Assembly: GCF_020745735.1 (NCBI RefSeq)
Contig: NC_083435.1
Span: forward strand, 33,541,231-33,605,230
Direction of reading: 5' to 3'
From: Hemiscyllium ocellatum
Lineage: Eukaryota
DNA length: 64,000 nt
Within the stretch, counting starts at the first letter, position 1; each line of letters opens with the position of its first letter. Below the pieces are notes generated by a model. It did not search any database. It saw only the letters and a program-made list of their open reading frames with translations, and was not told the origin of the DNA. The translations under genes were made by a program, and so were the position numbers. Positions 2,859 through 29,974 of this stretch are shown here, one piece after another.

Positions 2859-3740
2859 TTAATTTTGTATCTTCTGAAAATTTTGACATATAATCAAATT
2901 CTTTAACTGATTTCTGAACTTTGACTGTGCCATTGCATAAATAAATGTGTTGGTGCAGGAGCTCAGATGTTGAAGCATGTATTTGTTTTCTCTATAATAG
3001 TGAAATGTGCATTGTAATCAGTTTGCTAAAACTGATTCTCCGTAAATTGTACAGATATATGACAGAAAGAAATTAGCACCCATAGCGAGATAAAACTTCC
3101 AGAAATGGCAAGCAACAATATGATAGATTTTCTGCGATTTTCACTTTCTGGGTCGTTCATGATTTCTCTGAATTCCCTCCTTATGCGACTGCTCCTTACA
3201 ATATGCCTCATGGTCAAAACATTGAACAGTGAAATAAAGGAAAATGCCGAAAATCGGGTTAAAAAGTATGAAAATTCAAGTAAGCCTTCCAAACGGGCAT
3301 AACATGGAACTCACGCTTTACCACACAGAGTCATGCTGCATTGTCCATTACAATTTCAGGTTGGTTTACAAAATAAACTGGCAGGTTTTGTCCAACACAA
3401 AATCTACAAACAATGGCTATAACCACAGTTGCAGTTTTCTATGTGCAGTATTTCCCTCTCAACTTATGATAACAGATTGTTACAGAGCGACCAAAGCTGA
3501 AAGCAACTGTTACCCAATCAGGGCGATCAATGGAAATGAAACTGAAGAGAAAAGCAAGATGACAAATGTAACTGTAATCCAAGAATGAATTTGGGAAATA
3601 AATATTTTTGACCTCGGACAGAATTACTTCAAATTTTATGACGAGGAGGTCCGCTGCTACCATTGAGACTAGGTGATGAGTAATACATTTAGATAGACCA
3701 CAGTTTCCACAGAGAGGAATTATGATTGATAATAAGTTGG
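2859..3740 (-). pseudogene. GPR139-like class A GPCR pseudogene, copy A, exon 2 (TM1 end to C-terminus)
   Basis: Minus-strand translation: NLLSIIIPLCGNCGLSKCITHHLVSMVAADLLV...WVTVAFSFGRSVTICYHKLRGKYCT*KTA...NVLTMRHI...DPESENRRKSIILLLAISGSF...YMLQHLSSCTNTFIYAMAQSKFRNQLK. This matches the recalled consensus of the shark GPR139-like family (NLVAIVILSRGKCGLSKCIT, DRFVAICCQKLKTKYCTEKT, DPEMENRRKSIILL, SSCTNTFIYAVTQSKFR). Acceptor is AA instead of AG (3742-3741); at least three in-frame stops and two frameshifts. Confidence 0.92.
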
Positions 3741-6484
3741 TTGTAAGTAAATGTTAAAAGGCGTAAGTAGTTTTTTTTTCATAAGAGAAGGATAAGTACA
3801 TGTTAGATTACTTTTCCCCTTTCATTTCATTTTTTGCATACAGAATAAGAACCACTATTTTGCTCTGTTACGTGATTTGATGGCTTGCACATTCTTGCTG
3901 CAGAACTTCGAAATGACAGCAATGAAAATTTTATAAACGTTGTTAATGTGACATCCTCGTGTAAATTGGACGAGATGAGGGGGCGAATTTGTGGAACAAA
4001 GAAACAGAAACCACTCTTCGGCTATTGTGATGAAAACAATTAATTTAAATGTGCAAAAATTGGGGATGCTACTTCCTGCATGGATTGCGTCTGAGCATGC
4101 TGCTTTAACATCTGTTCGAACTGTCAAAGGACAACACAAGCATTGAATGGAAAAGAAACTCAAAGAGGTATTCACATGTTAACTGTGAAATGATGACTAC
4201 GGCAGGAATTTGCTTCGCTGTTTTTTGACAATTGAATTGAACCAATGAATTAACGGGTAGCTCCAATGAAAACAATCCACTCTGATTATATGTTCTTTCG
4301 TGAACAAAATACAGTTGGTCATATTACATTGAGAATTCATTGTTTCACTCAGGATTCGAAGCGAGGATGGTCATCGATGTCAAGCAAACTGACCCAGTCT
4401 ACAGTCTCTTGAGGCTTTGTGACAATAGATCAGACAACCAAGCTGATAAGAAGGAAATTTACAATGTCATTAATTAACATGAGAGCAATGGTTACTGAAA
4501 CATTTCTTTGAGGGTTCTCCTGAGAAAGGATAGCTGGAGTTGAAATGTTGCACCTGCTTTTTCTCCACAGACGCTTGTAGACCTACTGAGCTTTTCCATA
4601 AATTTTCTTTACGTATCACTTTTAATAATGGCTTCATCAGGCATCACAGCATGCTTGGTTGTACATATCCTCATACATGACTGATACTGATAATTGAAGG
4701 TGTATCTAAAATTATTGGTGATTGTCCAAATACATTAACTTCACAGCCATGTGAGATTAAAAAATGGCTAATTACTTAAAATTCGTAATGTGCAGAAAAG
4801 AGGTACATTTCCCATCATCTCAGCAGTGACTCTCCAAACAGCATCCCAGCCAGACATAGCCAACCACCCTATCGACGTAAATCTGTAATTAACATGGATA
4901 ACTGAACTAATCTGCATTTCCCTGGACACTACAGGACAATTTGCCATGTCGAAAATCCCTCACTTGCACATCTTTGGCCTTTAGGAGGGACATACTGCAC
5001 TCAGCAGAAATCCATGCGCATATTGGGTTTCTCGCTCTGTGAGGCAGCCGTGTTTACCATTGAACCACGTTACTATTCGCTGAAAGAAGAATTTCAAGAG
5101 AACGACTAACTTAACAATGTGAGGTATCTTTCCTTTATTTATTTAAACGAAAACGAATAGGGGCTATAGAACATCTCTCCTGAAAGCTAACCTGACTTGA
5201 ATCTCAGGTACATTTATATTTTTTTTTGGAATCGCTGTTTCAAAAAACGTCAATTAATTAATGGTTGAATGCATACACACAATAGCTGAGCAGTAAAAAC
5301 AGATAAAAGGTATATATTGCGTAAGCATCAATTTCGTGGGCTGTTTATATTTAAACTACAAAACTTCTTGTTTTCTATCTAGCACAGATAAAATCCCCAT
5401 TTTTGTAAGTACATCCTGCATCAGCCAACTCATCATTCTGTTCTCCCAGATACATTGAAACACGTTTTGAGTCAATCCTTAGAGACTACTGGGCCAGTAT
5501 GGATCATGTCAGATCATTAACCACAATTCCACGTTCCTAAACCATCTCCAATTTGCATGATGTCATGAACGATTCAAAATCGATAAATCTCGGTCTCGAA
5601 ATGACTTAATAACCAGGGTTCCACAAACTTCCATCGAAAAATATGCTGCAATTGAATGTGTTCCTCCTTTCCTTCATCTTAAATAATTTCATTGATTGTA
5701 GCGGCAAGTTCCAATTAAAACAGTTTTTTTTCAATCTCTACTCTTTCCCTTCCTTTAAGAATTTTCCATGTTTAGGGATTTGACTCGAATTCTTCTAAAC
5801 TCCAGATAATGCAACCGTATTCTCCCCACTCTCTTTAGAGGGCCAAACCAGCATCCCAATAAACTGTCTGCTGAACTTCCTTGGTCAGCATGGTCTATCT
5901 TCACTGCTGTGGTCTGAAGTGTACATATAACTGCAGCTGTGGTCTAGTTAATATTCGATTCAATTACTCTTGTATTCAAATCGTTTTGTCACGAATCCGG
6001 ACATAACTTTTCTGCCTCGGCATGCCCTCAGTGACTTATGAACAAGGACAAATCAGTTTACTTCCTATGGCCATTTTTTCTTATCACTCTCCATTGTAGA
6101 AACATTCCACGCTATGTTTGCTCCTTAATCTTCTTCAGACTCCAGTGTTCACAGTCTACCTATCTAAGACTGCCACATTTGATTAAACTCTCTGCTTTCT
6201 GCTTATTAACTGTTCCTCAATCCAAAACGATTCTTAGCATCGGAGCTTTTACTTCTGTTCTTTTTCTTTCTTGGCATGGTAAATGTTCAGACAGAACTGT
6301 TACATTACCTGACGATACACTCTCTAGCGTAAATTAAAACCATCCACCCACGTTTTAACTCCTCAGCAAATGATGGTTGATTAAATCGTTGCAAACTCCA
6401 GTTGAGATTTCTGTGTGGTGTACCACTGAGGTTTTTGGCTTCCACTTGCTCCCTCAATTTATTCCAGATTCCGAAGAATGAACT

Positions 6485-6802
6485 GGGCGGCACGGTGGCA
6501 CAGTGGTTAGCACTGCTGCCTCACAGCGCCTGAGACCCGTGTTCAATTCGTGTTCCACAGGCGACTGACTGTGTGGAGTTTGCACGTTCTCCCCGCGTCT
6601 GCGTGGGTTTCCTCCGGGTGCTCCGGTTTCCTCCCACAGTCCAAAGATGTGCGGGTCAGGTGAATTGGCCATTCTAAATTGCCCGTAGTGTTAGGTAAGG
6701 GGTAAATGTAGGGGTATGGGTGGGTTGCGCTTCGGTGGGTCGGTGTGGACTTGTTGGGCCGAATGGCCTGTTTCCACACTGTAAGTAATCTAATCTAATC
6801 TA
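6485..6802 (+). mobile_element. HE1-type tRNA-derived SINE, little diverged
   Basis: Head gggcggcacggtggcacagtggttagcactgctgcctcacagcgcc, core gtgtggagtttgcacgttctccccg, CR1-like tail ending (ctaat)n. Absent from the paralogous position near 28250. Confidence 0.9.
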
Positions 6803-7050
6803 AACTGTGTCTGTGAGCTTCAGGCATACCGAAAACAAAAGTCTTAAGCAGACCTCGATGGCAAAGCAATGCACACAGATCGTGCAAACTGTTACTGTGC
6901 TGATGAGTAATACTGTGGAAAATGTCCTTAAAAAACGACCTTCAAAACACAACCGTTTAGAACGTGACAATAATCCAAAGACGAGAAACGCAGTTGTGAT
7001 TCTGTTACTAATGCATTCTTGCCTGAAAATCTTGCAACTAATATCGATAT

Positions 7051-28689: not shown

Positions 28690-28920
28690 AAGACAAAGAA
28701 TTTGAAAATGTTGGATTAGTGATGCTGGAAGAGCACATCAGTTCAGGCATCATCCAAGGTGCAGCAAAATCGACGTTTCGGGCAAACGCACTTCATCAGG
28801 ATGAGCTTTTGCCCGAAACGTCGATTTTGCTGCTCCTCAGATACTGTCAGAACTGCTGAGCTCTTTCAGCACCACTAATCCAAAATCTGGTTTCCAGCAT
28901 CTGCAGTCATGGTTTTTAAC
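28690..28920. mobile_element. Palindromic Penelope-derived element
   Basis: Arms gctggaagagcacatcagttcaggcatcatcc...aaaatcgacgtttcgggc and gcccgaaacgtcgattttgctgctcctcaga. Confidence 0.75.
28769..28802 (-). ncRNA. Minimal hammerhead motif with one stem II mismatch
   Basis: Minus: auc CUGAUGA a gugc-guuu-gccc GAAA C GUC gau. Stem I auc/gau, palindromic ACGU stem III, GUC triplet. Confidence 0.55.
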
Positions 28921-28934
28921 GAAAGAATCTGAAA

Positions 28935-29469
28935 AGTCTAAGTTGAAGGGTTCTAGGGCCAGTTAGATCATAGCTGACAGATACTGCCCCAGGTTTTTAC
29001 GTTATTAAAAGAAATTTACAATGAAAGGGGAGTAACCAGTGCTTTCAGCTCAACTTTTCTCTGGTTTGGTTTGGCCTCAGCACAGTCATGTTTAAAAAAA
29101 AGATCCTGAACCCAAAGAAGCATGTCTATGCATATCACCCTCTCTGACTTCTCTCCTGTTCGAATCTGTTCTTGATTTTACCTTTTGTTCCAAAGGGTTT
29201 TTATGGGGATTGTTGCAAGTATGTGTAAAATATCATTAATTTGGATAGTCTGTTTACAGTAGATTAGGTTGTTCGGTATTCTGCTCGTTTTTGTTTGTGT
29301 TTCATTCCGTAATCTTGTAAATACATTCTGTTTTATTGAACATAAGTGATTTGACTGGCTGCATTTCTCCTCGAATAACCACTGTACACCTACTTAAAAC
29401 AACGTTCAAAGTTAGGGTCTGGGCCACTTTCTCGAAGTGTTTTGAGGAGGTCTAGCCGGGTCCATAACA
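28935..29469 (+). mobile_element. Probable solo LTR
   Basis: Ends ...ggtctagccgggtccataaca (terminal CA) and interrupts the duplication, whose homology to 7560/7605 resumes at 29470. 5' boundary unclear. Confidence 0.5.
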
Positions 29470-29974
29470 GTGAGTACACAGTCCCGTGATATAACCAACT
29501 TATAAATCTAACAATTTTTACATAACAGATGGGGAATTTCCATGGTGAGGTCACTTGCATCTGACGTGATGGTAATTGCGGTAATTTACATCATTCAGTC
29601 TCAATGTTAATGAGAAACCAACTTTGTGTTGGTCCTAATGAAAAAAAACGCATGAAACAGAAATAAACAAGAGCATAAAATACCAGCAAAAATAATTTCC
29701 TCGTCAATTTAGATAAGCTACTTAGAGTTTGTTTTCCACATTTTAAAGGATTTTGTGCACAGTTCGCACAATAGACGAAGTACACAAATGGAAATGATTA
29801 ATCTCTTTAACCAGTCAATTGGTCCTGTCAGACCTGGTAGGTAAACTTTACACTCCTGCAGATTCCAAATATCCCTAAACATTCATTCTTCGAGTATTTG
29901 CATATATTGGTCTTAGGTACTCTCAACTGGAAACAATCCAATTCTTAAAGAAGCATTATCTTAAAAGACAAAGT

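Follow-up and report, generated by a model that had tools for sequence, protein, structure and literature searches.

Disabled GPR139-like receptor genes beside an orphan MHC class II alpha gene on the MHC chromosome of the epaulette shark

Introduction

In tetrapods, clusters of olfactory receptor (OR) genes are linked to the MHC, as in the extended class I region on chromosome 6 in humans and chromosome 17 in the mouse, and a role of MHC-linked olfactory receptors in MHC-dependent recognition has been proposed. Sharks and rays possess very few canonical ORs. Genes of the GPR139/GPR142 type are found in vertebrate genomes in numbers of one or two each.

For the sawfish Pristis pectinata, a gene table places ten GPR139 genes at 13.38-13.68 Mb of NC_067438.1, between MHC-Ib genes and near BRD2 and B2M, with further 'probable GPR139' genes flanking C4 (PMC10751288). 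They are tabulated in the supplement of that study without discussion, and throughout the literature examined, receptor genes of the MHC chromosome appear in a supplementary table only and are never discussed.

Here we describe a window of 64,000 nucleotides from the epaulette shark Hemiscyllium ocellatum (NC_083435.1, positions 33,541,231 to 33,605,230; the contig is denoted C113), in which copies of a GPR139-like receptor gene lie head-to-head with an MHC class II alpha gene. The arrangement is very probably made up of two unprocessed pseudogenes, derived from an old tandem duplication within a receptor block of the MHC chromosome, and of an orphan class II alpha copy which is their neighbor only incidentally.

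Results and Discussion

The receptor family

The gene L002, an intact paralog 245 kb from the first of the two pseudogenes (A), scores 67.4 bits against the 7tm_1 model (PF00001; cut-off 30.5) and thus belongs to the class A GPCRs. Its best match among solved structures is GPR139 (PDB 7VUG and related entries; 32.7 bits, E=4.8e-7), followed by the PrRP receptor (E=6e-4). The search returned 765 relatives, mostly named 'probable GPR139', and among the matches listed all stem from sharks and rays. In the family consensus TM3 reads F-D-R-F, and TM7 reads C-T-N-T-x-I-Y with threonine replacing proline; the canonical D/E-R-Y and NPxxY motifs are absent. Class A receptors with variants of the TM3 and TM7 motifs exist, and such variants do not exclude membership. 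The genes consist of a short exon 1 (M..QIE..YYP.LA..G.P), a phase-1 intron and exon 2. A control query taken from contig C8 retrieved 2129 relatives at E<=1e-40, its top matches all lying on other chromosomes. The receptors form a very large, undescribed class A GPCR family which is expanded in elasmobranchs and labelled 'probable GPR139'.

Pseudogene A

The features of A and of its immediate upstream neighbor are as follows (window coordinates):

528-1901, minus strand: downstream flank of A, blastn HSPs against 23252-25127 with 67-89% identity; probable old tandem duplication unit common to B
2859-3740, minus strand: exon 2 of A, from the end of TM1 to the C-terminus; stop codon at 2859-2861
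3741-10326, minus strand: phase-1 intron of A, colinear with its counterpart in L002
10327-10395, minus strand: exon 1 of A with ATG, N-terminus and start of TM1 (HMM positions 1-23 and direct reading)
10537-12009, plus strand: retroelement ORF of 490 amino acids with reverse transcriptase and weak GIY-YIG, directly upstream of exon 1 of A

Pseudogene A is a complete two-exon unprocessed pseudogene with intron and flanks kept. It matches the family model with E=1.6e-212 (nhmmer) and yields four fragments of 139, 102, 53 and 33 bits with the family protein HMM; the largest fragment by itself reaches 15.1 bits against 7tm_1 (PF00001). Its nearest intact paralog is L002 (C113:33.2985 Mb), to which it is 89.5% identical over 891 bp of DNA.

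The first-pass annotation rightly recognized a GPCR copy of two exons here, and the short exon 1, phase-1 intron and exon 2 are all seen. The extent of 2859-7958 given to it has to be revised, as exon 1 is located at 10327-10395 and not near 7958. This exon corresponds to exon 1 of the whale-shark receptor P0001. The 6.6-kb intron aligns to C113:33299900-33319899, which contains the L002 intron, in three segments (4269-6485, 6803-7955 and 8093-10458; blastn, 84-85% identity), with repeat insertions at ~6484-6796 and ~7955-8093. A separate copy "C" proposed at 8930-10395 is rejected: this stretch is the upstream part of the intron plus exon 1 of A, colinear with the L002 gene.

Three premature stops are found in exon 2 (~3441, ~3333 and ~3028), together with single-base deletions at ~3264 and ~2983. 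Exon 1 comprises 69 nt versus 70 nt in the intact paralog, and the alignment to exon 1 of L002 puts a further 1-nt deletion into the last codon, giving three deletions overall. The GTAAGT donor can be read directly at 10321-10326 and is intact, while comparison with L002 reveals loss of the splice acceptor (AG to AA at 3741-3742). Within TM3 the FDR motif is changed to FGR and the cysteine is gone as well.

Recent segmental duplications in the region, which are prone to misassembly, could raise the suspicion that the lesions of A or the layout of A and B are assembly errors and that A is really an intact gene. The lesions recur unchanged in contigs assembled from DNA runs of two samples, which cover 2894-3113 and 3145-3900 with 0 indels and one substitution (at 3725), and every stop and both exon-2 deletions fall within these read-covered segments. 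Moreover, three of the lesions are stop-creating substitutions. An intact gene A disguised by misassembly is hence barely conceivable.

The ORF upstream of exon 1 scores 29.0 bits against RVT_1, just below the cut-off of 29.6, and E=0.064 for GIY-YIG; it belongs to a putative Penelope-like element.

Pseudogene B

The second receptor copy is represented by three colinear segments:

23252-25127, minus strand: downstream flank of B, homologous to and colinear with the flank of A
25302-25652, minus strand: exon-2 remnant of B, 3' third only, from ICL3/TM6 to the stop at 25302-25304
25698-28627, minus strand: intron remnant of B, colinear with the A intron at 4030-7592

B is a truncated unprocessed pseudogene that retains intron and flank. 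The call of 25302-25650 plus intron in the first-pass annotation is borne out. The exon-2 fragment shows ~70% DNA identity to A and L002 and matches model positions 544-870 with E=5.2e-49 (nhmmer). It is also found by tblastn and by the family protein HMM, the latter giving three fragments of 25, 18 and 13 bits. An extension of the fragment up to 26221 was rejected as background-level. The deletion in B removes ~840 bp, the counterpart of A 3191-4030, i.e. the 5' two thirds of exon 2 and the end of the intron. Exon 1 of B was not found with the family HMM or by alignment to A. Neither A nor B is likely to be functional.

The DNA between the receptor pseudogenes

The first-pass annotation had proposed a tandem graveyard of about five disabled copies (A to E) reaching up to the MHC gene, with D at 15430-16502 and E at 18850-19767. 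In this reading A and B are genuine, C terminates precisely at the true exon-1 ATG (10395), and hydrophobic ORFs occur within both D and E. C drops out of the count, being colinear with the L002 intron and exon 1. For D and E, tblastn with nine family proteins gives only E>4, six-frame segments against the family HMM only E>8, and nhmmer and blastn no match, copies decayed past ~55% DNA identity being below the sensitivity of these searches. In a lenient DNA alignment D and E reach 83-120, where the median of the window is 90 and its 95th percentile 125, and their ORFs have no Pfam match. With D and E at background by four methods (tblastn, protein HMM, nhmmer and lenient DNA alignment), a five-copy array is very improbable. 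The earlier number is too high, and two dead copies remain, A being complete and B truncated.

D and E consist of low-copy DNA and lie within a segmental duplication:

12066-29972, no strand assigned: segmental duplicate block (12066-21210 and 26584-29972), 90-93.5% identical to and inverted relative to C113:34,312,042-34,326,435

Inverted copies of D and E at 90-93% identity are present at 34.32 and 34.645 Mb of C113. The paralogous block at 34.31-34.33 Mb is devoid of a counterpart of 21210-26584, the segment which holds the exon-2 fragment of B.

The class II alpha gene

At higher coordinates the window carries three class II alpha exons:

33226-33474, plus strand: MHC class II alpha, alpha1-domain exon (PF00993, 54.1 bits; cut-off 23)
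37993-38274, plus strand: MHC class II alpha, alpha2 (Ig C1-set) exon (located with P0121, P0126 and P0154 as tblastn queries)
50291-50434, plus strand: MHC class II alpha, connecting-peptide/transmembrane/cytoplasmic exon (tblastn, 100% to residues 224-271 of P0121)

The PF00993 match confirms the MHC class II exon seen earlier near the GPCR copies. The alpha1 exon is 99% identical to the NCBI model XP_060706684.1 (P0121), and the encoded protein is 75-79% identical to the annotated class II alpha proteins of bamboo and whale sharks. Three domain exons make up this orphan copy; a leader (signal-peptide) exon was not found within the window by tblastn. The other two class II alpha loci are 5 Mb away, and class I clusters lie on either side of the gene on C113 (28.6-28.8 Mb and 35.25-37.8 Mb). 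A class II beta2-like Ig exon is 0.95 Mb off, and no beta partner is apparent close by. The earlier suggestion of a class II gene outside the core MHC holds in part: the gene is outside the class II region, yet it is still situated on the MHC chromosome. Annotators should treat the NCBI class II alpha model with caution: its exon 1 lies 102 kb upstream inside a high-copy LINE ORF, and its first intron encloses both receptor pseudogenes.

No class II leader exon or promoter facing B was found, and because of this a head-to-head pair acting as a functional unit is unsupported. The adjacency of the receptor copies and the class II alpha gene is most likely incidental.

The MHC chromosome and its receptor clusters

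C113, a contig of 49.3 Mb, is the MHC chromosome of the epaulette shark. It carries all 83 class I exon matches (24.1-46.5 Mb) and all three class II alpha1 exons, and among the kinds of core MHC genes that the first-pass annotation had proposed to look for, it has a BRD2-like gene (BET exon at 38.02 Mb), exons of proteasome-beta type at 45.81-45.85 Mb and C4-like thioester exons at 24.9, 25.6 and 47.0 Mb. Receptor copies are interspersed among class I, C4-like and proteasome-beta genes, including the segment at 45.8-47.5 Mb. At least 62 copies reside on C113, corresponding to 62 of the best 123 matches in a census of the best 123-150 scored matches, a share biased upward as the queries came from the C113 clade; 35 of them fall at 31.39-35.23 Mb. 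The window is thus part of a 3.8-Mb receptor block (31.4-35.2 Mb).

Chance adjacency had been expected to show itself by C to E lacking significant matches and by a uniform spread of the family through the genome. The former is observed for C to E as copies of their own. The latter is not, yet the family is not MHC-specific either, the top matches of the C8 query all lying on other chromosomes.

As to whether the linkage to class II alpha is kept in other elasmobranchs, an L002-type receptor and class II alpha share a contig in eight further genera or species (Rhincodon, Heterodontus, Chiloscyllium plagiosum, Rhinoraja, Pristis, Mustelus, Hemitrygon and Narcine), chromosome identity being indirect in all of them except the sawfish, where the published gene table confirms it. 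With the C8 copy as control, none of the top matches in Heterodontus and Rhincodon (0) is located on the MHC contigs of these species. In the receptor tree the MHC-chromosome copies form a separate clade with 99/97 support and the chromosome label changes 3 times versus 17.7 in shuffles, a split that may be sharpened by the choice of rows from two match lists. Inside this clade L002, which represents A in the tree, pairs with whale-shark P0001, and sawfish P0052 groups with the C113 copies. Two rows run against the pattern, one being a Narcine gene and the other an H. ocellatum copy located on contig C189. The MHC genes on C113, the eight other elasmobranchs, the sawfish table and the tree clade show the linkage of receptors and MHC to be real, old and common to sharks and rays. 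The proposal of an MHC-linked birth-and-death cluster of a different GPCR family applies at the scale of the chromosome; a functional unit at the kilobase scale has no support.

Origin of the arrangement and comparison with known systems

The A and B units very probably arose by an old tandem duplication. A is a younger sister of L002 (89.5% DNA identity), put out of action by three stops, three 1-nt deletions and the lost acceptor. B, at ~70% identity, is older, and a deletion has left it with only the final third of exon 2, intron sequence and the flank. What separates A from the class II gene is mostly a recent inverted segmental duplication shared with 34.31-34.33 Mb, which takes in part of the intron of B, together with retroelements; four methods found no further receptor copies there. 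Two duplication-prone families would have shared a chromosome for hundreds of millions of years, and the adjacency is probably a by-product of this.

Alternatively, selection may keep the receptors of the MHC clade beside MHC genes, for instance as a chemosensory repertoire, with the pair in the window as a relic; already before sharks and rays diverged, the clade would have had its place between genes of class I, class II, C4 and the proteasome, and it would have been retained for cooperation with the MHC. The old linkage common to sharks and rays agrees with such coupling, as does the interspersion at 45.8-47.5 Mb. On the other side, both local receptor copies are dead, the class II alpha leader exon was not found, the family is mostly on other chromosomes, and the conserved karyotypes of elasmobranchs would probably hold any cluster in place without selection. 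We consider functional coupling unlikely and favor incidental adjacency. If coupling were true, the clusters would be a cartilaginous-fish counterpart of the debated linkage between MHC and olfactory receptors, and if the family is chemosensory they would provide an independent second case for deciding whether MHC-receptor linkage is selected or accidental.

The window itself is ordinary: both of its receptor genes are dead and its class II alpha gene is a stray copy. Its wider context is more useful, since more than 20 Mb of a shark MHC chromosome are interspersed with clusters of an undescribed receptor family. As unprocessed pseudogenes of a tandem family, A and B show nothing out of the ordinary: both keep intron and flanks, A having both exons with point lesions and B a large deletion. 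Human GPR139, after which NCBI names the family, is likewise a 7TM receptor of the rhodopsin class and gives L002 its best match among solved structures, but at only 32.7 bits; the annotated members of the shark family number in the thousands, and its TM7 carries N-T-x-I-Y instead of NPxxY. The sawfish cluster on NC_067438.1 belongs to the same family and the same kind of chromosome, with P0052 in the C113 clade; its genes are annotated as intact, whereas the copies in the window are all dead and have an orphan class II alpha gene as neighbor. With the tetrapod MHC-linked OR clusters the shark receptors share the tandem arrangement of class A GPCR genes, a birth-and-death turnover with many pseudogenes and a long-lasting linkage to the MHC. 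They differ in being GPR139-like genes of two exons, in their elasmobranch hosts and in a chemosensory role that is only putative. Furthermore, the tetrapod OR clusters are located at one flank of the MHC, whereas the shark copies are interspersed with class I, C4-like and proteasome-beta genes and most of their family resides elsewhere in the genome.

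Receptor copies in the window

Two copies of the "probable GPR139"-labelled class A GPCR family of elasmobranchs, denoted A and B, are present in the window, both on the minus strand and both dead. The first-pass annotation had proposed about five, but tblastn, a family HMM, nhmmer/blastn and a lenient DNA alignment concordantly return these two only. With nine intact family proteins as queries, tblastn is significant only at 2862-3904 (-) and 25305-25719 (-), the rest of the window giving E-values of at least 0.15. Searches of the whole window with exon-2 DNA by nhmmer and blastn yield 2857-3741 (E=1.6e-212) and 25298-25652 (E=5.2e-49) and nothing else. 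The family HMM, run over all stop-free six-frame segments of the window, recovers the places of A and B as well as 10300-10398, a segment aligning to profile positions 1-23. In the lenient sliding DNA alignment only A and B rise above background, the three further proposed copies C (8930-10395), D (15430-16502) and E (18850-19767) scoring 83-120 where the window as a whole has a median of 90 and a 95th percentile of 125.

Receptor copies A and B, their colinear parts and the neighboring retroelement (L002 is the intact paralog of A at C113:33.2985 Mb)
2859-10395, minus strand: copy A, two exons, 6.6-kb phase-1 intron
2859-3740, minus strand: A exon 2, 89.5% identity to L002 over 891 bp
10327-10395, minus strand: A exon 1, reads MNSSMLIQIEAMDYPILAIVVVL, then GTAAGT
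10537-12009: retroelement ORF of 490 aa, RT and weak GIY-YIG match
25302-25652, minus strand: B exon 2, surviving last third, stop at 25302-25304, ~70% identity to A and L002
528-1901 and 23252-25127: colinear in A and B, downstream flank
2847-3191 and 25287-25624: colinear in A and B, exon-2 end
4030-7592 and 25698-28627: colinear in A and B, intron

Compared with L002, exon 2 of A is interrupted by stops near 3441, 3333 and 3028 and has lost single bases near 3264 and 2983. In TM3, FDR has become FGR, one base is missing in the last codon of exon 1, and the AG of the splice acceptor is changed to AA. Across 2894-3113 and 3145-3900, contigs of two samples' DNA runs show zero indels and one substitution, and the exon-2 lesions are therefore not assembly errors. 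Between its two exons, A (4269-6485, 6803-7955 and 8093-10458) is colinear at 84-85% with the DNA upstream of L002 exon 2, a stretch that holds an intact exon 1. Taken together with the exon 1 at 10327-10395, this colinearity means that A spans 2859-10395. An end at 7958 had been assigned to A previously, but a search for exon 1 near this site found nothing there. What had been taken for a separate copy C is the intron and exon 1 of A, its end at 10395 being exactly the ATG. A 313-bp repeat within the intron (6484-6796) has a 95% copy at C113:33,299,934-33,300,244, adjoining the intact paralog, and weaker copies in the window at 20347-22625, 30732-30922 and 33802-33982.

Copy B had been described accurately, as a piece at 25302-25650 plus intron; its flank, exon-2 end and intron are colinear with A, and the counterpart of A 3191-4030 is deleted. 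An exon covering the whole of exon 2 (25302-26221, lenient alignment) was considered and rejected: with a score of 91.5, its 5′ part stays below the background maximum of 105 (mean 61), and the DNA of this extension is colinear with the intron of A instead. Neither the family HMM on the window segments nor comparison with A found an exon 1 of B, and no DNA similar to A 8093-10460 was found upstream of it.

D and E are part of a recent segmental duplication. Segments 12066-21210 and 26584-29972 form an inverted duplicate (90-93.5%) of C113 34,312,042-34,326,435 that contains D and E, and neither is a receptor copy; their alignment scores are at background. D has inverted copies of 90-93% at C113 34.32 and 34.645 Mb, its final 220 bp being a high-copy repeat; of E there are three copies at ≥90% (itself included) and three at 70%. 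The longest ORFs of both match no Pfam family. The paralogous stretch has no counterpart of 21210-26584, the segment holding the exon fragment of B. A further family exon 2 (C113:34,306,188-34,307,072 (+), ~71% DNA identity to A) is located 5 kb past the 34,312,042 end of the paralog, the end matching window position 29,972; on the corresponding side of the window the class II alpha gene begins.

The window sequence contains zero N. Positions 40000-45000 (-) are occupied by a LINE whose endonuclease- and RT-like open frames measure 157, 177 and 249 aa, and fragments akin to it (7040-7500, 17980-18300, 36150-36640, 56400-57260) account for most internal repeats. A TG/CA-rich, microsatellite-like tract (48600-49900) gives rise to spurious ORFs rich in Cys/Val and in His/Thr, the longest of 292 aa.

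Identity and size of the receptor family

The longest stop-free piece of A (3442-3753, minus strand) has at least 150 scored matches in its own genome, the majority within open frames of 300-350 aa. L002, which is intact, 245 kb distant and 75% identical in protein sequence, is the nearest among the matches listed. Single fragments of A match PDB and Pfam entries too weakly to identify the family, so the intact paralog was needed for naming it. L002 scores 67.4 bits against Pfam 7tm_1, and its closest solved structure is GPR139, yet at E=4.8e-7 only. In full-length family proteins a short exon 1 (M..QIE..YYP.LA..GVP) is joined to a single large exon.

The strong expansion in cartilaginous fish noted in the first-pass annotation is borne out by 765 relatives of L002 in public proteins (E≤1e-10) and 2129 relatives (E≤1e-40) of a control query, a receptor copy from contig C8 of the same genome. 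The literature searched on GPR139 and sharks or cartilaginous fish yielded no description of this expansion. No RNA run holding the intact paralog was found, which is not read as silence.

The class II alpha gene

Exons of the class II alpha gene
33226-33474: alpha1 exon, PF00993, 54.1 bits
37993-38274: alpha2 exon
50291-50434: TM exon

The window shows no detectable leader exon. The NCBI model of the epaulette shark (Hemiscyllium ocellatum) gene encoded here, XP_060706684.1, takes its first 46 residues from a high-copy LINE ORF at C113:33,471,870, 102 kb upstream of the alpha1 exon, and its N-terminus is not a signal peptide. This first coding exon (G000:C113:33,471,870-33,472,007) precedes the window by ~69 kb; the LINE ORF behind it has 1522 loose candidates with open frames up to ~1140 aa. 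As modelled, both receptor pseudogenes fall in the first intron.

In a representative protein library, alpha1 gives useful E-values only for its own model and a bamboo-shark fragment. Judged by derived residues in common, the Chiloscyllium plagiosum model P0154 (184 aa) may be the orthologue; no other gene is called within 10 kb around it. An Ig C1-set exon (L039:4541-4846 (-), 47.3 bits) is found at C113 ~34.558 Mb, 0.95 Mb past the window, and class II beta2 domains are its closest solved structures (HLA-DQ beta, E=3.7e-11). An ORF upstream of it (L039:6836-7276) is beta1-like by eye and matches neither Pfam nor PDB. The beta2-like exon, together with the orphan alpha gene in the window, points to a class II alpha/beta pair that at some time entered the receptor block as a copy and later came apart.

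Linkage of receptors and MHC genes

The window (G000:C113:33,541,231-33,605,230) belongs to a contig of 49,326,738 bp, 1.24% of the 3.98-Gb genome. All three class II alpha1 exons of the genome (33.57, 38.57 and 38.73 Mb) and 83 of 83 class I exon matches (24.1-46.5 Mb) are on C113. The contig further holds a BET/BRD2-like exon (38.02 Mb), exons for proteasome-beta (45.81-45.85 Mb) and thioester exons of C4-like type (24.9, 25.6 and 47.0 Mb). C113 also carries 62 of the 123 best matches to a cross-species family profile, a share biased upward since the profile was built from relatives of a C113 gene. These receptors are interleaved with MHC genes at 25.76-26.17, 31.39-35.23 (35 copies), 43.56-43.67 and 46.08-47.53 Mb; the last of the 35-copy block, at 35.232 Mb, is followed 14 kb on by a class I exon (35.246 Mb).

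The window itself shows ordinary birth-and-death decay within a large receptor block. The MHC-linked birth-and-death cluster proposed earlier stands in part, at chromosome scale. Since neither receptor copy here is alive and the class II alpha gene is itself stray, their kilobase-scale adjacency is most likely incidental.

The linkage is kept in other elasmobranchs, the best L002 relatives and class II alpha sharing one contig in eight species: 9/9 in Rhincodon (25,067,188 bp), 22/23 in Heterodontus (74,466,956 bp), and co-location likewise in Chiloscyllium plagiosum, Rhinoraja, Pristis, Mustelus, Hemitrygon and Narcine. Away from the MHC chromosome, too, the family is abundant, as seen with the C8 control, for which, among the matches listed, 0/14 in Rhincodon and 0 of many in Heterodontus are on MHC contigs. 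A maximum-likelihood tree of 53 rows, picked from two match lists, a choice that may sharpen the clade split, separates an MHC-chromosome clade (28/30 rows, support 99/97) from one on other chromosomes (22/22 rows, support 98/92). The location label changes 3 times on this tree against 17.7 in shuffles, and sharks and rays occur together in several sub-lineages of the MHC clade. At the scale of the chromosome, the linkage of receptors to the MHC is real and older than the shark-ray split.

Towards the end of C113 the order is proteasome-beta (45.81-45.85 Mb), class I (46.018), receptors (46.08-46.27), class I (46.455), receptors (46.5-46.6), C4-like exons (46.96-47.0) and receptors (47.1, 47.5), and the receptor genes at 45.8-47.5 Mb are thereby within what resembles the class Ia/C4 core.

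For sawfish, the supplementary gene table of Verissimo et al. 2023 (PMC10751288) places ten "probable GPR139" genes, never mentioned in the main text, at NC_067438.1, 13.38-13.68 Mb. MHC-Ib genes lie on both sides of these ten, BRD2 and B2M are 0.3 Mb away, and a C4 gene is flanked by two further family genes (PMC10751288).
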